A stretch of DNA of 63,894 nucleotides, filler included, from Reticulomyxa filosa (Eukaryota > Protista > Foraminifera): NCBI GenBank assembly GCA_000512085.1. It is 21 parts of 21 records of this genome, joined end to end, with 100 filler letters (N's around TTAATTAATTAA, not from the genome) between each part and the next. Parts side by side here need not be neighbours in the genome. Positions count along the whole stretch, not along the records: positions 4,220 to 15,221 come from ASPP01006199.1; 20 more parts are not named here. The stretch is one strand, 5' to 3'. Below the pieces are notes generated by a model. That model did no database searches. It saw only the letters and a list, made by a program, of their open reading frames with translations, and had not been told where the DNA came from. The position numbers and the translations under genes were made by a program. Each line of letters begins with the position of its first letter. Position 1 is the stretch's first letter. Below, in pieces: positions 2,640 through 15,562 of the stretch.

Positions 2640-3460
2640 ATGAATTGAAGTCCGACGTGTCAGAGCCTGAAGAGCGATTTGTCTCGGTGCTTTCCAAAGA
2701 AAATATCGTTTGTGTTGTCATATCCTCCACGGTATAATGTTTATTTGAACAAAGAATAGACTTTTTTCTTTCTCTATCTGCTTTGCAAAGCCTTGACGTC
2801 TTTTAAAAATTTTTCAAAGGGGTGAGGGAAACTGGAGTAATGGTACAACTCTCTAACTAGGATGAAGTATATGACGTTTAGTATTTCCACTATAGTAAAT
2901 ACACAATGTCTCAATAACTCTCTTTTGAATGAAAGCTGTTTTGGTACATAAGTTTACTTGAAACTATAATTAAAACAAAAATAATGTGAGTTGCAATTCT
3001 GGTAGAATGAAGTGAATTGTAAATGATAGATGGGATTAAGTTTCATTTATTACAAACAAATTTTTTAAATGTACGTAAGAAACTTATGTGAACATATAAC
3101 ATTGATTTACAGTGCCATTGACATGTCGAAGATTACTTAAACTTGTATCACTTCGAAATTGCAATGCCCGTGTCTACAGTCGATAAATGTATTGTTAGCT
3201 GACTTGTTTACTTGTGACAGTTTTTTATTTAAATATATATTATGTTATTATTAGTTTACGTTAGGGTCAATGCCACAGTTGAAGTCAAACACGCTTGAAT
3301 CATTCGCGGGAAAGTTCCGCTCCCAAGCAGATCTGCAGTGAGTCGAGCGTATCCATTCACTGTTTGAGAGAACATAGTTGCTGCTACTATTCCAAAAGGC
3401 CACTTGTCCAGTCACGCATTAGCACAACAAATGCCGTCACAAATACAAAGAGCATTGGTC
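2640..3460 (-). pseudogene. Possible decayed secreted-protein gene
   Basis: The minus strand reads MLFVFVTAFVVLMRDWTSG, then after a frameshift FWNSSSNYVLSNSEWIRSTHCRSAWERNFPANDSSVFDFNCGIDPN. Further exon-like GC-richer blocks carry stops. No family recognised. Confidence 0.3.
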
Positions 3461-3701
3461 ATTTCATGTCTTAACTTTCAAACTATCTGTTTCCTCCTCC
3501 AGCTCCTACGTTTTTTACTCAAATATAGTTTATTCACTCCTAATAATTTTCAAAAGAAACAACAGAATTGCAAATATAAACATACGTTTTGAAATAGTGT
3601 TACTTTTTCAAAGAAAATAAAACCTAGTAAAAAACAGTGAGTATTTCGCACGTGTGAAATCTCTTTAAAAAAGTAGTAACTTCAAAAAAGAACTCTATCT
3701 C

Positions 3702-4119
3702 ATGTCTACTCAAGTCAACAACTTTCAAACTTTGCCTGAATTACCAAAACCATTCGCAGATGCACAATGTATTTTGTTCAAGGAAGAGCTTCTTATTTGT
3801 GGAGGCAAACAAATTAACGACTGTTACTCGTACCATACTCTGAAAAAACAATACAAATACATCTGCTCTTATCCCAATGACGCTAAAATATATGGACATT
3901 GTATCATTCAATTGAATCATCCACAAACCAATCCCAATGAAATTGATTTGTTATCTTTTGGAGGACAAGATGAAGATATAATGAAACAAACATTTTCAAT
4001 GAAATATAAAAGTGTTTGGGAAATTACTGATCATAATAACAATACTAATCAGAGTGACTCCAAATATGACAATACTTCCATTTCTCAACCTTTCAATACT
4101 TGGATACAACATAATCAAG
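3702..4119 (+). CDS. Kelch-repeat (beta-propeller) family protein, N-terminal part, truncated by contig end
   Basis: ATG-initiated ORF with Kelch signatures: LPELPKPF..AQCILFKEELLICGG, CYSYHTLKKQYKYICSYP, GHCII, LLSFGG. Confidence 0.85.
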
Positions 4120-4637
4120 NNNNNNNNNNNNNNNNNNNNNNNNNNNNNNNNNNNNNNNNNNNNTTAATTAATTAANNNNNNNNNNNNNNNNNNNNNNNNN
4201 NNNNNNNNNNNNNNNNNNNTCGAAACTACCAAAACAAAACTACTTGTTAAAGGTACAACTTTATTTTCCATTTTTTTTTAAAAACCTGAGACATGTACTA
4301 CGATATCAATGTTTTCTTTTTTTAAATTTTTTAATCAATTATCGAATTAAATCAGTTACATCGTGTATAAAGTGTACAAGTCTGTCCTTTAGTGTTTTTA
4401 GAAAGTGTGAGTCGTCTTCAATGCCGAACTTTAAGATTGATGAAGGCAGCAAAAGTTTAACGTAAATTTGCAAATAAACTTTTTGGCTGTCGATGTACTT
4501 TAACACATTAGAGTTTAAGTAATGAAAGAAGATGAGGTTAGAGCAAAAGAACAGAAAACATTTAATAAAATGTACTAAATTTTTTTGATCTTGTGAACCA
4601 ATCTTTTGCAAAAAAAGATAAATTAATGCTTTGAACT

Positions 4638-6257
4638 TTACAATTTTGCCTGTCTAGTGACAAAGTCCAATAAAATTTCTTCACTGCCACCAGCAATCGC
4701 TTGTGATCTGACAATGCGATATATGCGGTCAATGACAGCACCACGTCCGGTTCGAACGTAACTTCTACCACCAAAGATTTGGCTGGCTTCAATGACAACT
4801 TGTTGCAACATCCGGCTGGATTGTACTTTTAACAATGCGATATTGCGGGGAATGCTTTTATCTTTTTGGCCGAGTCGGTCATGTTGGATTTGATAAGCTG
4901 TTCGTTCCAAGAAAGCATGCGTGGCCAATACCAGACGACTCATTTCTGCAATTTTGTGTCGAATTACTTGATGTGACGACAGTTTTTTTCCAAAAGTTTC
5001 GCGTTCTCTCGCCCATTGGATCGATTCCTCGACGCACAGTCGCCCAGCGGCCACACAGCTACAAGCAATAATAAATCTTTCATTATTGAATCCATACATC
5101 ACAATTTTGAATCCTTCGTTCACTTCACCAATCACATTCTCAACGGGCACTTTCACATCTTTGAAAGTCACCTGAGCCGTTTCACTCATCTCCGACCCTT
5201 CATTTGGTTGTTTATTTTTTGTGTACGTATGTACGTATACCCTATCGTTATTAAAAGAAAAAAGGACCAATAATTAAATTATTTTAAGTGGTTAACCTTG
5301 TAGTGGGATCTTGTCAGTAAATACGCCTTCTTGACGAGGGACCAATATTAACGTCAAGCCTTTATATCCCTTGCCACTGGTTCGTACCAATGTTACAAAA
5401 TAATCCGCCCAACCCCCAAATGTAATCCAATACTTTCCTTTTTTTTTTTTTTGTTAAGACAAAGGAGAAAAAAAAGTTTATTTGTACATATTAGATATAA
5501 CTTTTTTCCCCTCGTTAAAATTTTTTTTTTGAAGTTTAATAAACTACAATTAATATAATACAAACCTCCGTTGATAATGTAATACTGCTTGTTATCATTT
5601 GGATCAGTCACCAACACGGCCTGTGTGGCGATCTGTGCAACGTCACTGCCACCACGCAACTCGCTAATGGCTAATGAGATCACTTTCTCTCCACTGACCA
5701 CTTCCCGTACGCACTGCTTGTGGATCGCGTTCTTCCCAAAAAATAACACAGGTGGTAATGACTGTTCACAAATTAATATTATTTTCAAAAAGCACATAAT
5801 TTTATTGCAAAGGGAAGGGAAAAGGTCTTTTTTTTTTTTTTGTTTTCCCCTCTGGAAACATTTCTCTCCCCTTGCCCCCCTTTTCTGCTTACAAATGTCT
5901 CTATTAAAGTCGTCTTTTAACCATATTGTGGATCCACAAGGAATTCACTCCTCCTGCTTTCACCATTTCTTGAGCAAACACGATGGAGTAGAAAGGGTCC
6001 CATTTGTATCCTTTCCATTCCGTTTCTCCCAAGCCCCATGGGAACATAAATATTCCACCATGAGCGGCCACTTTTTTCAATAAATCACGAGGTATTTTCC
6101 CATCCTGCTCCCATTTCTGGTAGTACGGCAAGATCTCTTTTTCCACAAACACCCTCACGTGCTTTCGAAAGGCTGCATGTCCTTCATTATAATAGGGAGA
6201 CACTTGATTTTCGAAATCCAGCAATGTTGGAGTATTTCCCTTTTTTTCAGTTGCCAT
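4638..6257 (-). CDS. Acyl-CoA dehydrogenase (LCAD-type catalytic Glu) with C-terminal PTS1 (AKL); 4 exons
   Basis: Exons 6257-5922, 5761-5566, 5437-5297 and 5197-4638 splice in frame via GT-AG. Motifs: LAISELRGGSDVA, NGGKYWITFGG, FKDVKVPVENVIG, FNNERF, RETFGKKL, QIFGGRSY, AIAGGSEEI. Ends RQAKL*. Confidence 0.95.
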
Positions 6258-7581
6258 TTCTTTTCTATCTTGCTCTTATAGACGCTGAAATGAAAGAGGG
6301 GACCGCAAGAGTTTTTGTCCTAAGAAGAACGTCACAAAACTGTCTTAGTGTACTTCTGTTTTGGTAATGTAACATTAAAAACTAAAGTTACATGTTAAAA
6401 AGAACAGAAAACTAGTGAACGAAAAATAACGCCAAAAAAAAATGGTCAAAAAGGAAAGAAAAAAATCTAGTTTGTTTTTATTACTTCAACTTAGCCACTC
6501 ATATTGAAATTATAAGAAATGTTGGTGAAATATCAAGTGAAAGAACTTCCTAAAAAAGGAAAAAGACTTGGCTGTAGCACAAACAAGCACAAAGGGCAAA
6601 TAAATCTGGAAATACAGTAAAAGTAATTGAAAAGTAATTATCACGTTCCAGGCATAAATAAAGAAAAGGTGATTGAATTCTTATATCCCTTTATACAGTA
6701 AATAATTGAAAGCAAATTATACGCATGTATAAAATTGATTATTCTATTATTTTAAAAAGTTTTGTTTCAAAACTGTACTTCAAATTTTTTTCTTTGTACG
6801 TATGATTATAAATTTGACATAAGTTTTTTTGTTATAAAAGCTAATGAACATCACCAAATGGTTGCAATACTTTAATTGTTGAAGAAGTAAAGAAAATACA
6901 ATATTGGAACTTATGCATTCTGAGATATTAAAGAAGATGAAGATTTTTGAGTTTATTGACTGATATAAAAGAATTAATATAAACTAGTACATAAGTAAAG
7001 TAATAGTTATATATTTTCAAAGTTTTATTTTTATAATTTTTTTACGTATAAATTCAAATTTTTGATTTGTTATTTATAACAATTGACGACAACAATTCTG
7101 ATGTAGATTATATACAATGTGTTAAAATATATGTAGTTAAGTCAAGTTGCACTTTATTCACAGACTAGTATATATTTTTTATATTATATAGTAAGCAAAT
7201 CGAGTTTTCGACGTCAGCTTCTTGTTCAATGTTTGTGTGTTTGATGAAAAAAGTTGTAGATTACATGCAAATGAAATTATATTTATGTCGTACGCAATAC
7301 TGACGATAATATCAAATCATATTAGAATGGTAGTTGGACTTATGCAAATTTTTTTTTTTGTAAGTTTAGTTTAGTAAAAGTAGGATCAAAGACATTATTT
7401 TTTCGTTTAAAGAAAATATCATAATAAAAGTATATTCTTTTCAAAGCTATGTTAAATAGAATACAGCAAAATGTAACATCATGTTGTATTTTCTAATTTT
7501 TAGAAAGAAGACAAATGTTTGTATATTGACCCCTCTTTGCTCTTTCAAAAGATAATCTTCCATATATCTTGTGTTTGAAAT

Positions 7582-10500
7582 ATGTCAGAGCCTGAAGAGA
7601 CTGAGAAAGTGCATTTACAAGAATGGTTTAATGGTTTGAATGAAGCAACGCAGCATGTGCTGATAACAAAGGCACTGGAAGAAGATAGCTTAGAGTTTAA
7701 CTCGTTGGTCGAAATGATGTTGAAGCACAAAACCTATGACAAAGAGCAAATCCCAACGTTTCGAATATTTGTAAAATCATTGAAGAGTCTGACGGAAGAT
7801 ATGCCCAACAAAAAAGAGGAAAAAGAAGCAAAGCAGGACAACACAGCAAAAGCAGGAGGCAGTATAAAAAGCCCAACGACAACCACAGCGCTAAAGACGA
7901 GCGACACAGCAAAAGCAGAGACGAACAAAAAGGCTTCTGACAAAAAGATACCTTCGACCAACACCAGCACAAGGTCCAAGTCGCAAGGTGCCGCCCTGTC
8001 ATCGAGAGGAAGTGTGAAAGAAGTGTCCAAGGGGACGAAAGCATCAAATGTACCAAAAGGATCGAACGTACCGATTACAAGGGTGAGGATGTTGTGTGTG
8101 TGTGTGTGTGTATGTTTAAAGTCATTGAAAATACGTATACACTTGAAGACATATTTTACACTTATGAGTATGAGTATACGTATTTCAAAAAAAAAAAAAA
8201 GGCAAAAAGCAAAGGAGAAGTGTTGGCAGTAACAATAACCCCCGCTTCGCCACAAGACGATGCAAGAGGACGAGCAAAGATAAAAAAGAAGGGGACACTA
8301 CCACAACCACAGCCACAACCACAGCCACGTCAGCACCAAAGAAGTCAACAACATCAGCAACAGCAACAGCAACAGCAACATCAGCATCAGCATCAGCATC
8401 AGCATCAAGACCATCAACAACAACAAAAGTGGGTAGAGACAATAGCGCGGATTCAAACAAAAAGACAAGTGGCAACGACAAAGGAGAAACGGAAGGGACA
8501 AAGGACAAAACAACAGAAAAGAAGTCGTCGTCGTGGAGCCCTGCTCCGTGGTACAAACAAAACTTGACAGAGAAGCTCAGCGACTTTTGGGAGGAGAAAG
8601 AAGCCTCGCACATGCGTGGCAAATGGAACCACGACGTGGATCGACTGAAGACGACGCCCAAAGTGGCCACGGCGGTGATGCGATTCAGCCCCTCGCCCGA
8701 CCGCAGCAGATACGCAGGACTGCAGCGTACGTATCACGGCAAAGGTCGCAAGCGTCCGCGCAAAAATGTACCCAAGCCTAAGAACATCAAGTTCCGTGCG
8801 CTTCAGCGCGCCACCGATTATGGAGGAGGCGAAGGGGGGCAGCACCAACGAATAGAAGGGACCGGCGGAGAGGGTGGCCAGCACAGTGGTACGACCGGTG
8901 CAGGAGGAGGTGAAGGAGCAGACCCCAATGCTGGTAATAAGGTTAGTGGTACCGGTGGAAATGGAGGGGTCGATGAAAAGAAGTCTGGGACAGGAGGTGA
9001 TGAAGGCGAACATAAAGTTAATTTTTTCTATTTGGAGAACAAAGTGATACAAAAGGGGGGGGGGGAGGGGGAAAAAAAAAGATTGACTCTGGATTCATCA
9101 TACCAAAAAAAAAATATATATATATATACGTACATATGTATATATAACATTAACATTAACAAAAAAATATATCGTAATGTTTGCTTGTGATTAGAAAATA
9201 TCGAAAAAAGCAAAATTCAAAAAAAAACTAGCCATCAATGAAGCCGTTCGAGCCGCAGAACGCAACGAAGATGCCATTGCGGTGAACTTGGACAACATGC
9301 GAAACAAACCCGACTTTGACAAGATGATAACGTACAACATCAATTGGCTCGCCAACTTGGCCAACAATCCCTTCAATGTCGATTACATCATCCAACAAGG
9401 GGCCATTGACACCATTGCCGAAATCATGAAACATCACAAAAACAACCCCGCCATCATGAAGGACGTGGCTCGACTGCTCGACTGCATCGCCAAGTCCAAG
9501 CCCGAACACGCCGATTTGGTACTGCACTCGTCCATCATTGACCAGTGCTTGGCCACATTGCGCGACTTCCCCAATGAGTGTGGCATTTATGCTCTCGACA
9601 TTTTGGATTCCATCTTGGATGGTTGCAGCGACCCCCATCAAATGGTCGACATCCTCGTTGACAAGAACGCACTGCCCATTTTGTGCGACGCCTTGGACGA
9701 GTTTGGAGAGGAAAACTCCAAATTGGCCGCCGCCATTACAAAGCATTTGACCAAGCAAGCCAAATGGAAGCCAGAGACAATGGATTGGATGGGAGAAAAC
9801 GAACTGTTTTTGCCGATTTTGCGAGCCATGCGTGAGCATCCCGATAATGAGGAATTGGGTTTTTACGGATGTCACATTTTGCCGGTATACATTTTTTTTT
9901 CTCTTTGATATGTATATATTTATTTTATTTAATTCAGTAGTAATGAATAATAATAATAATAATAATAATGTTTTGATTTGATTTAATTATATTTATTTAA
10001 AAAAAAATAAAAAAAGGATATTGCATTGCGCAACAATAAGTATCTACAAGCCATGAAAGACAAAGACGTAGTGCCAATAATTTGCGGTGTGATGTCCGAA
10101 ACACCCGAGTCCGAGCGACTACAACAAGCGGGAGTGCGGGCATTGAAAGTGTTTGCCGACCGAGACGATCTGCTGGATGCCCTGAAGGTCGTGTTCAACT
10201 TTGACAAGTTTGACTATCCGATATTGAACGAGGGACTGATCATCGTTGGGAACTTGGTGCTGCTCCCAGAACATGCCGACTTTGTGACGTCCAAAGGCGG
10301 CGTCAATGTCCTCTTGAATTGCATCACGGCAAAAGACAACGCGGCGAACCAAAGCTTTGAAGACTTGGACATTATCGCCAAAGCGACGAGGACCTTGGGT
10401 CGACTGCTGGGCAACGAGGAATCTGCTCGGAACTTTAGCAACGCCAGAGGACTCGACCACTTTGAACATTTGGTCGACAAGTATAGCGACGAAGAGCCCA

Positions 10501-10620
10501 TCCTAAATGCAGTAATGGAAGCATTGGAGTATTTGGTGAAAACACCAAACGGACAAGAACAAATTCTGGAAAGTGGTATTTTGACACTAGTCACAGAAGT
10601 ATTGGCAGTTGTGTGCATCT

Positions 10621-10651
<31 letters not shown>

Positions 10652-13600
10652 TCTATTATTTATTTGTATTGTTTGTTAACTCTTAAATCTCTCAATACAA
10701 ATACAAACGCAAATACAAATGCAAATACAATTAGGAAAATCCAGAGTATAATATCATGTTCCGAAGATATGCCAAATTGATGGGCTATCTGCCTTTGGAC
10801 AACCAAGAATTCTTGGGCGGCTTAATTGATGCCGGCATGTTGAACTGCATCACCGATAACTTGACGCATCACATGGACAAGCGCAATGATGTAATGGCGT
10901 CCTCCGACTTGATCTGCGACTTGGCGACGTTGCACCCGAGCTTGTCCGGACAACTGGCCGAGGCAGACGCGTCTCCACTGATCGCCGCGATGAAGACCCA
11001 TCAAAACGACGCGGAGACCATGAAGCACATCTTTGATGCCATCGAAGCGCTGGTCGCCGGAGACCCGTCCTTACGTGAGCTGTTCGAAAAGGCAGGAATG
11101 GACTTTGAGTTGGACAAAATGTTGAAAAGCGAAAACACGTCATTGCAGATGAAAGAGATGATTCAAGAGTTTTTGGACCGCTTGAATGCATTGAAGGCAA
11201 AGCCTGCAGAACCCGAAGAAAATCGACGAGACCAATTGTTACGTGAGCTCAAAGAGTTGTACGATCAATTGGACGATCTGCAATTTGCAGAGCAGTTTAT
11301 TCAGGAAGGCAAAGTTGTTGGAGTGTTAGACGGTTTGTTATTTATTTATTTTTATTTATTTATATTGTCATTATTGCTATTGCTATTGCTATTGCTATTG
11401 TTATTTTGTGTTCTTTTGGGAAACAATAGGAATCCAAGAGTATTACGATGATGCCGAAATCGTGGAATGGGGTCTCAAAGACTTGGCAAAGATTGCACGC
11501 GTGCCAAACAGCTTTCCAACGATCGAAGAGGCAGGACTCGCTGAAGCAGTTGTCCAATGCATGCTGGAACATCCTGGTGTGATCGAAGTTCAACTCGAGG
11601 GCTTCAAAGTGTTCAGCGGATTGGCACAACAGAACGACAACAACATACCCGATATATTGATGCAGCCAATTACTTTGGATACGCTATTGAAAGGCGTCGA
11701 AGACAACATTATCAGTTCCATTTTTGTCGGCGAGTTTTGCAACATTGTCGAGGGACTGTTGAAATCCAATCCAAATGATGCTTACAATGTTGCCAGCGCT
11801 TTACAAGCAGAAGGTGTGTTTTTATTTACCTTTGTTACTATTATTATTATTATTATAACAAATATTAAACAAATTAAACATAGGCGTGACTGAGGTGTTG
11901 GAAGATGCATTGGATATTCATAAACAACAAACACCGCAATTGGTTCCTAGAATTGAAGAAGTGCTCGGATATCTGAAACACTTGCTCACGCCGATCGATG
12001 CGAAGATGAATGTGGACATGGATCTCGAACCTTATGGCACAGCGGTGTTGACTATGGCCCAATTGGGCAATCTCGACGAAGAAGAGTTGATAAAACTCAT
12101 GTCTTCGTGGGACACGGATCAATTGATGAAAACGATGCGAGAAGCCAAAGACCCCATGCTGGTCCAATGGAGTGTCAATGAGGTCAATCGACGACTCAAT
12201 GGCGGTGATCAAGATGTTCACACTGCCATGGTAGGTGGTGGCATTGATGCGTTGTTGGATCAAGCGCACGCTCATTTTGATAACGAAGGTCCTTTGGGTG
12301 CCGCCTTGGACACACTGGGAACATTAGCTAACGAGGAGAGATTGAAACCAATGTTGGGAATGATTGGTTTGATTCAAGTTTAGCTTTTTTTTATTTTTTA
12401 AAAAAGAAAATTTTATATATATATATACAACTTATCAAAAAAAAAAAAAAAATTAGTTGATATTAGAAACAATGCGTGCTCATCCCCATGACATCGAGCT
12501 ATTGGATCGTTGCTGTTATTTGCTGTCACTTTTGACCTACAACAATGAGGACAACATCAACCAAGTCATCGAGTTGAGTGGCATTGCCGATATTCTCAAC
12601 GTCATCAAACGACACAATGTTGTCAACTTTTTGTGTGGATCCGCGCTTTTGGTGTTGGTAAACTTGTGTCATCGATCAGACAAAAACAAAGTTTTGAATT
12701 GTATTTGTTTATTTGTATATTTATTATTTTTTATTATTCTTAGGTTTAAAACTTTTTGAATATATGTGTGTGTGTGTGTGTGTGTGCATAAATAATAAAG
12801 GTGTTGATATGCCGAAGTGGCGGTGCAAAAGTAAGCATCGATTGCTTGGTGCAATACAGCCATTGTCGAACTACCGATGACGAAAATGTGGTCGTCGCGG
12901 CCCTTCGATGTTTGGCCAACTTTGGATTTGTCGAGGAAAACCTGAAGCAATTGATCAAACTGAACACCGTGCACTTGATCATGGACACGATGCAGCGAAA
13001 CACAGACAAGACTGCGCTGATCCAAATGGGTGTCGTGACGCTAGCAAACTTGAGCAGTCACGAGCGAGCAGTACGTATACTAGTCTCGTTGGGAGTGATG
13101 GATCTGGCCATCAACGTGTCAAAAGGATATCCTGACGAAATTGAAATCCAAAAGTCATGTTTGGGATGTATCGGCAATTTGGTGAGCGAGCCGGCGAATG
13201 TGGTTTTGTTCATGGACAAGAGCGGACACTTGCGATTATACGAAATCATGCGAGATCTGTTGTTCGAAGAGCCCGTCGTCGTCTTGTGTTTAAAGCTATT
13301 GAAAATCCTGGCCGTGAGTTCTGACGCAGCAAACAAGCTTTGCAGCAGCGGTGGATGTGGCGTGGTCACTCAACTGTTGAATGACAATATCAACAACACC
13401 TCTATCATCATGTTGGGATGTCAGGCTTTGTGTCGAATGATCGTCACAAAGGAGACTGCCAAGGAAATGTATTCACAAGGTATTTCTATTGATACGTCAT
13501 TTTAGCATATACATATATGCATTTAAACTATAACTAATAACACAAAATATTATAAAATGAACACAGGTGTCATCGATCTAATGATTCAGATTTCAACAGA

Positions 13601-14508
13601 AAACGAAAATTGGGCAAACTTGGAGTTGTACAATGAAGTGGTTAAAGTTGTTATCAATCTTACCAGCGCCGAGGAAAATGCACAAGCATATGCACACAAA
13701 GCGGCGATCCCATTGCTAAAGGCAATCGAAAGACACACCGAGGTAATGTTTTTGCAAAATGCTGCAGCTGCCATGACAAGCATGTCTTTGTATCCTGTCG
13801 CCTCCAAGTATTTAGTCAAGCGTGGTGCTGTTGCGGTAATCATCAAATCAGCCATTGATAACAAAGACAGGAAAAATCTGCTCGTGCGTTACATGCGAAT
13901 CATATCCAATTTTTTATACACCGAAAGTCGAACCAGTGACGAGTGTTTTAAAACAAATGCTTATTCTGTTTTCGAAGAACTCACACAAGAAGACAAAGAG
14001 GATAAAAGTGTACAAAAAGAATGGCGTGAGTTTGTAACTGCATATCGCATGAAAACTCAAAGATCTTCGTCTTTCATTGGAGCCAAGCACTACTCTATCC
14101 CGATTCAAGATCGCTTAGATCGTGCTTATCTGCGACTGTTGACTGGTGGCACAATTGTTATCAAACACAAAGGCAGAGGCACCAAGCCTCACAAAAAAAT
14201 TATTCGTGCAGATGAAACATGCACGAGACTGTTATTGAAAAAACCCTGATGACACCAGCAACAAAGCTGATACTGACAAACATGCGAAACAAATTTTAAT
14301 GACTGCTGTCAAAGAAATTAAGTCTGGTAATGATCATCCATGGCTTAGAGGGATACCAAATGACAAATGCTTCCAAATCGTTGCTTCAGATCCAAATGGA
14401 AAAGATTTTTATGTCTGTTTGGAAACTTTGACCCCTGAAGTATGCCAACGTTGGGTAGAAGCATTACAAAGTTTCATGCAAATAGTGCAAACCAGTGAAA
14501 AAAATTAA
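7582..14508 (+). CDS. Giant armadillo-repeat protein with C-terminal PH domain (GAC-like architecture); 10 exons, ~1,950 aa
   Basis: Exons 7582-8082, ~8202/8210-9016, 9195-9884, 10017-10607, 10735-11332, 11430-11813, 11884-12377, 12457-12690, 12801-13479, 13567-14508. Intron phases match from the end of exon 2 onward. ARM-like repeats (GG...I..M..H..., CLGCIGNL, ALRCLANF). PLC/ELMO-type PH domain at the end (LLTGGTIVIKH...CFQIV...LET...CQRWVEALQ). One extra base at ~14244-14246 (AAAAAACCC) interrupts the PH domain. Confidence 0.88.
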
Positions 14509-15562
14509 TAAAAGAGTTTAAAAGAAGAAGGAGGGATTTCCATTTTTTTTCTATTGTGTGCTAATATTTGAAACTATTTTTGTCACAATCAATTGTGTTA
14601 CTTTTTTGATGCAACAAATCGATTGTGTGTTGTCAAGATATATGAAAAAAATTATAATGAAATAACAACTCACTCATTCACAAATATTCTATCAGCTTAT
14701 CCGTTAGTAACATTTTTTTAGAGAAAAAAATAAAAGAGTGATCTCCAATAGGACATCCAACATATGTCTCACAATTGGCGTCCATCTTTTTATACTTGAA
14801 ACTTTGGTTAATGCCTTCTTCACTTGTCCCTGCAAAGCGATTAAAATAAGACAATATCTTTCCAATGCCAGATAAAAGATAATTATTACAATATTTAGTT
14901 TTTTTGGAAAGATAAAAATTTAATTATTAAATTAGAAAATGCCAAAACATGATCTAGACATTTGCCACTGCAACACTGCACTACAAAATAAAAAAGTTTA
15001 CAACACAAATTGCAAAGCAGTGTTTTGGTATTATTACTGTGGCTATGTCGGCCCAAATGATGTGCAACAATAGTAATGATTTCCTTTTCCAGCCGTTTGG
15101 AATGATTTGTTGGTCTTGTCATCTGAATATAGATTTTCGCGTAGAGAAAGAAAATTCATTGAACAAAATTTGCGAATGAAATTCTTTTTAATAAAAACTG
15201 AGTTTTACTAGTTAAAATCTANNNNNNNNNNNNNNNNNNNNNNNNNNNNNNNNNNNNNNNNNNNNTTAATTAATTAANNNNNNNNNNNNNNNNNNNNNNN
15301 NNNNNNNNNNNNNNNNNNNNNACAACACAATCAAGCAAAATGTGGTGCTACACACACTAGATTCATTAACATTTTCAAAAAAGAACTAAAGGACGTGACC
15401 GAAACACGTATAATTAGCCAATACACAACACCAAAGAAAACAATGCTCACCAAACGGTTTCCAGTTTTTATTTTGACGAAGACAAAAAATGGAGTAAAAT
15501 GATATTTTCAAAAAAAAAAGCAATAATAATAGTGATGAAAACATATAAATTTGCAATTGACA

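Follow-up and report, generated by a model that had tools for sequence, protein, structure and literature searches.

A conserved rhizarian family of armadillo-PH proteins in Reticulomyxa filosa and its candidate relationship to the apicomplexan connector GAC

Introduction

Does a foraminiferan carry a relative of GAC, the glideosome-associated connector of Apicomplexa? The question is raised by the RFI_07942 locus of Reticulomyxa filosa, which occupies positions 7582-14508 (+) of the window, the whole 63,894-nucleotide stretch of joined R. filosa DNA that was analysed, and lies within its 11,002-bp piece 4220-15221. GAC is indispensable to Toxoplasma and Plasmodium, both for gliding and for invasion. 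The original prediction, made from the sequence alone, read the locus as a 10-exon gene of an apparent foraminiferan, coding for a protein of ~1,950 aa in which ~1,400 aa of armadillo-like repeats are followed by a single C-terminal PLC-type PH domain, and took this architecture as the one that defines GAC. The foraminiferan origin is correct, as RFI_07942 of R. filosa matches at 100% identity. We find that RFI_07942 belongs to a conserved family of Rhizaria that has no name as yet. Its members begin with an N-terminal cap, continue with ~33 armadillo repeats of the canonical three-helix kind and, after a short linker, end in a single PLC-delta1-type PH domain. Judged from sequence comparison, the family and apicomplexan GAC are probably distant homologues over the whole length of the family proteins, a reading to which we give a probability of roughly 0.6.

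Results

Gene structure of RFI_07942

On the plus strand, 7582-14508 consists of a series of long open frames, between which lie AT-rich introns of 70-178 nt with GT...AG ends. The limits of exons 3 to 10 were set by frame continuity, and the gene has 10 exons when exons 1 and 2 are counted in. For the searches the exons were taken singly, and all full-length work was carried out with database proteins, that is, the deposited model (P0039) and its relatives. The features are as follows.

7582-8082 (+): exon 1, predicted; open reading frame (ORF) with ATG start and GT donor at 8083, part of deposited RFI_07942.
8267-9016 (+): exon 2, predicted; boundaries from the deposited model (tblastn of P0039), Q/H-rich and G-rich low complexity.
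9195-9884 (+): exon 3; conserved protein start, with the N-terminal cap and the first armadillo repeats; Pfam ARM matches.
10017-10607 (+): exon 4; armadillo repeats, ARM_ARMC5 at 2e-10, collinear with relatives.
10735-11332 (+): exon 5; armadillo repeats, then an acidic non-canonical stretch; splice sites, phase 1; collinear with relatives.
11430-11813 (+): exon 6; armadillo repeats, collinear with relatives.
11884-12377 (+): exon 7; armadillo repeats, collinear with relatives.
12457-12690 (+): exon 8; opens the best-conserved C-terminal module and scores ~100 bits with each foraminiferan relative across 78 aa.
12801-13479 (+): exon 9; canonical armadillo repeats, the most conserved exon, 260-270 bits against relatives.
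13567-14105 (+): exon 10, first part; final armadillo repeats, then the stretch that connects them with the PH domain.
14106-14508 (+): exon 10, last part; PLC-delta1-type PH domain in two frames, stop codon at 14506-14508.
14238-14243 (+): A6 run with one extra base, a +1 frameshift that splits the PH domain (sequence, and alignment to RFI_12136).

Exons 3 to 10 contain 1,444 in-frame, stop-free codons up to the frameshift and 88 more beyond it. Each of these exons has weak Pfam armadillo matches (ARM_ARMC5, ARM_LRRK2, Arm), and exon 9, searched singly, also matches Vac8 and LRRK2. The last 89 codons match Pfam PH, and a PDB search with them gives a single genuine match, to the PLC-delta1 PH domain (1mai). 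Both pieces of the PH domain in the last part of exon 10 match the PH domain of the relatives described below. The TALE protein Hax3, which the PH piece also matched, was discarded as an artefact of repeat summing. The predicted arrangement of armadillo-like repeats with a single C-terminal PLC-type PH domain is well founded, given ~1,440 aa of repeats, the Pfam PH match and the match to 1mai.

The 5' part of the gene is of a different kind. Exons 1 and 2 (7582-9016, ~460 aa) have no counterpart in any family relative in the per-exon comparison. A codon-usage scan found coding-like usage in exon 1 only within the first ~200 nt. The frame and extent of exon 2 are uncertain. Frame 1 is open across 8174-9187, and the purine-rich stretch 8200-9190 is open in more than one frame, as is expected of a T-poor region. 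Putative exon 2 also contains microsatellites at 8296-8426 (CAG/CAA/CAT, read as poly-Q/H). Since no relative matches exons 1 and 2, the total of ~1,950 aa is unverified and the conserved core amounts to ~1,535 aa. The 10 exons with GT-AG introns hold as predicted, and only the ~1,535-aa core of the predicted protein is backed by relatives. Further microsatellites lie in introns 3, 4, 5 and 8, at 9941-9969 ((TAA)n), 10694-10730 ((AATACA)n), 11372-11405 ((TATTGC)n) and 12765-12786 ((TG)11), respectively.

A conserved rhizarian family

A phmmer search with exon 10 against 1.84 billion representative proteins returned 26 matches at E<=1e-3, and in the relatives the match of the first part of this exon sits directly ahead of a C-terminal PH domain. 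One protein matched by exon 10, P0022 (2,446 aa), was set aside as an unrelated repeat protein. The complete relatives that were matched are 1,490-1,653 aa long and come from the transcriptomes of Ammonia, Nonionella stella, Bolivina argentea and Rosalina and from marine metagenomes. When the exons were compared locally one by one, each piece from exon 3 through the PH piece matched the foraminiferan relatives, and the matches were ordered and abutting. Exon 3 matched residues ~60-300 of these relatives with 166-184 bits, its match starting at residue 60-100. In the Ammonia protein P0050 (1,603 aa), for example, the matches run from residue 62, where that of exon 3 starts, to residue 1600, where that of the PH piece ends. 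The ordered per-exon matches to transcript-derived relatives validate the exon model. The same relatives show that the armadillo repeats and the PH domain share one mRNA in related species.

R. filosa itself has at least three paralogues, RFI_12136, RFI_10655 and RFI_32075. In a quick FastTree phylogeny of the family with midpoint rooting, RFI_07942 groups with RFI_10655 inside the foraminiferan clade. Distant collinear members were found in Cercozoa sp. M6MM (2,275 aa), in a transcriptome assigned to the euglenid Ploeotia vitrea (P0016, 2,045 aa) and as two giant metagenome proteins. The Ploeotia protein could be a prey or contaminant sequence, or a 5'-truncated myosin; its partner in the tree is P0018, a myosin from a metagenome. 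A word-indexed protein search with exon 3 gave no match among candidate proteins of 127-400 aa, and the same kind of search, started from the cercozoan protein of 2,275 aa, added no more than two further giant relatives and did not find GAC.

Two of the distant members carry a myosin motor in front of the armadillo repeats. In the protein CRZ11265.1 of the plasmodiophorid Spongospora subterranea (P0024, 2,666 aa), the motor at residues 1-663 matches myosin X/V/XV with an E-value of 1e-150. In the metagenomic P0018 (2,551 aa), a myosin head, IQ, ~1,800 aa of armadillo repeats and a PH_12 domain are encoded in one uninterrupted 7.6-kb ORF at 3001-10656 of scaffold DOMB16-1_SAMN04262032_METAG-scaffold_683. 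The two fusions are not sisters in the tree. The head match of P0018 starts at profile position 120, so that a first exon may be missing, and a 97-aa gene lies 760 bp upstream of the ORF. Armadillo-PH tails are not mentioned in the myosin classification literature compared here.

The existence of these fusions raises the possibility that RFI_07942 is itself the tail of a myosin, the motor exons of which were lost from the assembly or lie upstream. Upstream of the gene, however, an acyl-CoA dehydrogenase gene on the opposite strand follows after 1.3 kb of AT-rich spacer, which leaves no room for a motor. The full-length foraminiferan transcripts start 60-100 aa ahead of the exon-3 match and have no motor, and none of the exons has a Myosin_head Pfam match. 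We consider a lost motor to be very improbable and treat RFI_07942 as a motorless member of the family.

The deposited model and the A6 frameshift

The deposited RFI_07942 protein (P0039, 1,721 aa) maps onto 7582-13502 with 100% identity. It reads past several donor sites into introns (13480-13505, 10608-10670). At its 3' end it runs from exon 9 into the following intron, where it meets a stop at 13503-13505, and it is thus without the last armadillo repeats and the entire PH domain. The public RFI_07942 model is wrong at its 3' end, and the PH domain has remained hidden.

The PH domain is further split by a frame change, which had been predicted near 14245 and which we place at the A6 run at 14238-14243. 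Frame 2 meets a TGA at 14247-14249 just past the run, and the PH domain continues in frame 0. At the A6 run, exactly one base fewer is present in the paralogue RFI_12136 (78% identical; ASPP01008803.1, GCA_000512085.1), which reads through. RFI_12136 has a one-base gap of its own relative to the RFI_07942 gene inside the PH region (ASPP01008803.1, ~790-800). Its deposited C-terminus diverges past the last strands, and this model may also be damaged.

Two explanations of the frameshift have to be weighed. If it is real, RFI_07942 would be a decaying paralogue that makes no PH domain, with RFI_12136, RFI_10655 and RFI_32075 as the functional genes. An in-frame stop does follow the A6 run, and R. 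filosa has at least three further paralogues. On the other hand, the frameshift is the sole defect in ~1,535 conserved codons, and homopolymers such as the one in which it sits are well known for sequencing errors. The frame beyond the shift is intact and conserved to the shared C-terminus. Decay of the gene appears improbable to us, and a homopolymer sequencing error is the simplest explanation of the A6 frameshift.

Fold and PH domain

A single-sequence AlphaFold model of exon 10 was too poor for use, with a predicted local distance difference test score (pLDDT) of 49. A model of the C-terminal 611 aa of the relative P0007, which was built with a 31-sequence alignment, reached a pLDDT of 90. 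It consists of ~11 three-helix armadillo repeats, in which short, medium and long helices are repeated. They are followed by 11 disordered linker residues and then by a PH barrel, complete with the helix at its end. These strands and the final helix fit the seven-strand barrel of PLC-type PH domains.

The PH domain is present in all full-length relatives. When a family profile of linker and PH domain was compared with the PDB, the best match was PLC-delta1 at 1.4e-13 (1mai, 118 positions), followed by PLC-gamma1/2 at 1e-12 to 1e-9, ELMO1 at 6e-6 and pleckstrin. In the profile alignment the equivalent of PLC-delta1 K30 is nearly invariant, the R40 equivalent is basic and the beta1-beta2 loop is rich in K/R. 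The PH domain of RFI_07942 has a lysine at the K32 position when the window sequence is read against this alignment. These K30, K32 and R40 equivalents suggest that the canonical pocket binds acidic phosphoinositides, by which the PH domain would probably hold the protein at a membrane.

Relationship to GAC

The relationship to GAC was approached with a full-length family profile of 1,594 positions, built from 26 full-length members. In the PDB, Toxoplasma GAC (TgGAC; 8bt6_A, 8c4a_A) is the top match of this profile with an E-value of 4e-80 and 273 bits, followed by a designed armadillo protein (120 bits), beta-catenin (60 bits) and LRRK2 (51 bits). The placement of the aligned stretches is more telling than their sum. 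At 62.6 bits, profile positions 49-445 align with GAC 11-409; this stretch opens the repeat block, and it is here that the original prediction had noticed a likeness to GAC. The N-terminal block of GAC thus scores higher than that of the Spongospora family member (41 bits). Profile positions 576-819 align with GAC 605-852 on the same diagonal. At the other end, profile positions 784-1319 align with GAC 1729-2273, directly ahead of the PH domain in both proteins. A further stretch, profile 368-824 on GAC 963-1510, resembles a second copy of the middle block. Exon 3 as a single sequence matches GAC as well (E 1.5e-5, phmmer against the PDB).

Controls run with the same profile behaved differently from GAC. 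Four generic armadillo proteins (P0040-P0043) scored 86-185 bits, with all of their stretches piled up at positions 900-1400. The distant family members P0028 and Spongospora P0024, in contrast, tile the profile in order, as GAC does. In a Foldseek search with the C-terminal model, GAC was the best natural match (E 2.5e-11), and its alignment of 712 columns was the only one longer than the armadillo part. The GAC PH domain is itself reported to be structurally closest to PLC-delta1 (bioRxiv 10.1101/2022.12.09.519741).

A number of observations weigh against kinship with GAC. The GAC score per repeat is ~6 bits, no better than that of beta-catenin or importin, and both the total score and the top E-value are inflated because GAC has 53 repeats. 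We therefore reject the top-ranked E-value as proof of kinship by itself. Unrelated repeat blocks inside the family cross-match at 40-100 bits. Of the five significant GAC stretches, no more than three can be put into one ordered chain, as many as are expected if the order is random, and two are off-diagonal. The case for collinearity consequently rests on the anchoring at both ends, the chance of which we put at roughly 0.002-0.02 in a back-of-envelope estimate. PH aligns on PH (profile 1467-1589 with GAC 2509-2638) at only 4 bits, and the PH profile does not list the GAC PH domain at E<=10 in the PDB. The GAC likeness that the original prediction had seen in the segment before the PH domain is accordingly not significant. 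Both of the peptides that it quoted are present, the first in exon 3 and the second in exon 10. Taken singly, exons 4, 5 and 10 do not match GAC (phmmer against the PDB) and exon 9 does so off-diagonal. The single-exon PDB matches are not collinear with GAC and, had they stood by themselves, would have overturned the idea of kinship; the picture changed only with the family profiles.

Structural comparison tells against kinship in the same way. The top of the VIA-align list is held by designed armadillo proteins, catenin, importin-alpha and Vac8 (Z 31-34), and GAC is absent from the top 50. A shape search of the Atlas gave Vac8, ARMC6 and melted/VEPH1. GAC is moreover held to be specific to Apicomplexa, and its absence even from chromerids has been reported (PMC9250747), so that vertical descent would need many losses. 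The language-model look-alikes of exons 3 and 10 are generic armadillo clusters.

Several of these observations support the strongest alternative, which holds that the family is a lineage-specific armadillo-PH scaffold with no specific kinship to GAC, that both are long canonical armadillo arrays to which a PLC-like PH domain was added independently and that the match is repeat-to-repeat similarity summed over 53 repeats. Besides the generic score per repeat, the missing GAC in the PH search, the generic structural neighbours and the single exons that find GAC nowhere or off-diagonal, this alternative can point to the 86-185 bits that generic proteins reach over only ~1,000 aa. It can also point to ELMO and melted/VEPH1, which likewise pair armadillo-like repeats with a PH domain; the claim that this architecture defines GAC has to be given up for that reason. 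Against the alternative stands the placement. The N-terminal 400 aa of GAC pick the N-terminal 400 positions of the profile, the next block follows on the same diagonal and the last big block stands directly before the PH domain in both proteins, an end placement that the generic controls never show. GAC also ranks above every natural protein in both the sequence-profile and the Foldseek searches. Mere summation of repeats is in our judgment the less probable account, even if it remains a serious one.

We therefore favour distant homology between the rhizarian family and GAC. The relationship that the original prediction proposed is partly supported, by the top PDB profile match and the anchoring of both ends; orthology is at most a candidate reading, and rigid structural matches are generic. 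The Foldseek check that had been proposed came out in favour of GAC among natural proteins, whereas VIA-align ranked importin, Vac8 and catenin first. On present sequence comparisons, the rhizarian family is so far the strongest candidate for a non-apicomplexan relative of GAC, with functional orthology at the candidate stage.

Neighbouring genes

A multi-exon acyl-CoA dehydrogenase gene at 4638-6257 (-) stands head-to-head with the armadillo gene and has Pfam matches to Acyl-CoA_dh_N, _M and _1 (the last at 3e-37). The 1.3-kb spacer between the two genes has a GC content of 22-30%. Downstream of the armadillo gene, a 75-aa ORF lies at 14895-15122 (-).

Discussion

Proposed function and significance

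How might such a protein work? The armadillo solenoid is probably a long scaffold that holds partner proteins. Since the same module stands behind a myosin motor and IQ, within a single reading frame, in Spongospora and in a metagenomic eukaryote, the free-standing foraminiferan protein would most likely link membranes or membrane cargo to actomyosin, either by a motor bound in trans or by direct actin binding. That such fusions occur in two lineages argues that the usual context of the module may be the actomyosin-driven movement of membranes or cargo. The C-terminal repeats of GAC have been likened to UCS myosin chaperones (Kumar et al.), which fits an actomyosin picture.

A broader scenario, which we offer tentatively and hold to be less likely than not, is that GAC did not arise within Apicomplexa and descends from an old armadillo-PH connector that survives in Rhizaria in free-standing and in myosin-fused forms, the latter uniting connector and motor in a single chain and the free foraminiferan form serving as a membrane-actomyosin connector of the reticulopodia. 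If the two are related, a free-living rhizarian family would give GAC an evolutionary origin and would supply shorter and simpler GAC relatives for structure-function work. As an independent line of argument, the existence of myosin fusions speaks for solenoids of this type working together with actomyosin. For the foraminifera, the family is a candidate membrane-cytoskeleton linker in cells with extreme pseudopodial transport.

Comparison with known systems

The PH domains of PLC-delta1 and PLC-gamma are the best matches of the family PH domain and align over the whole domain, with basic equivalents of K30 and R40 kept in the family. In contrast to the phospholipases, the family has no catalytic X/Y, EF-hand or C2 domain, and the equivalents of W36 and R56 are not kept. 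With the canonical armadillo proteins (importin-alpha, beta-catenin, Vac8 and designed proteins) the family shares the three-helix fold, in which tandem repeats of ~42 aa wind into a superhelix, at a root-mean-square deviation of ~3 Å over 400 residues in the alignments with Z of 31-34. Those proteins have 8-12 repeats and no PH domain, whereas the family has ~33 repeats and a PH domain, and the sequence similarity between them is generic only. ELMO and melted/VEPH1 come closer in domain order, with armadillo-like repeats ahead of a C-terminal PH domain. For ELMO there are weak ELMO_ARM matches in some family members in addition to the ELMO1 PH match, and for melted there is the Atlas shape match with a TM (template modelling) score of 0.48. 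Both are nevertheless much shorter than the family, and the similarity is weak, with no collinear sequence match.

With GAC the family has in common a long armadillo solenoid and a single C-terminal PH domain that resembles PLC-delta1. The two differ in size, the family having ~1,535 conserved aa (armadillo part ~1,440 aa, ~33 repeats) and GAC having 2,639 aa (~53 armadillo/HEAT units over ~2,500 aa). The RFI_07942 protein is ~1,000 aa shorter than GAC, and the cercozoan relative has 2,275 aa. The repeats are canonical armadillo throughout in the family and mixed armadillo/HEAT units in GAC. The lipid pocket differs as well. The canonical pocket and loop are basic in the family, whereas the pocket is reported to be negatively charged in TgGAC (bioRxiv 10.1101/2022.12.09.519741), and the GAC type of PH domain, in which phosphatidic acid is bound by a non-canonical basic patch and the canonical pocket is acidic, would not describe the family PH domain as predicted from its residues. 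TgGAC binds F-actin (residues ~559-1114) and adhesin tails, as determined by experiment (PMC10125020).

The closest known systems also include the rhizarian-type armadillo-PH myosins, Spongospora CRZ11265.1 and P0018. They have a myosin head, IQ and a longer repeat array, whereas RFI_07942 is without a motor. Their C-terminal 600-aa armadillo-PH module is clearly homologous to that of the family, with 627-747 bits against the module profile, and the N-terminal block of the family is also present in the rhizarian armadillo-PH myosins, in order.

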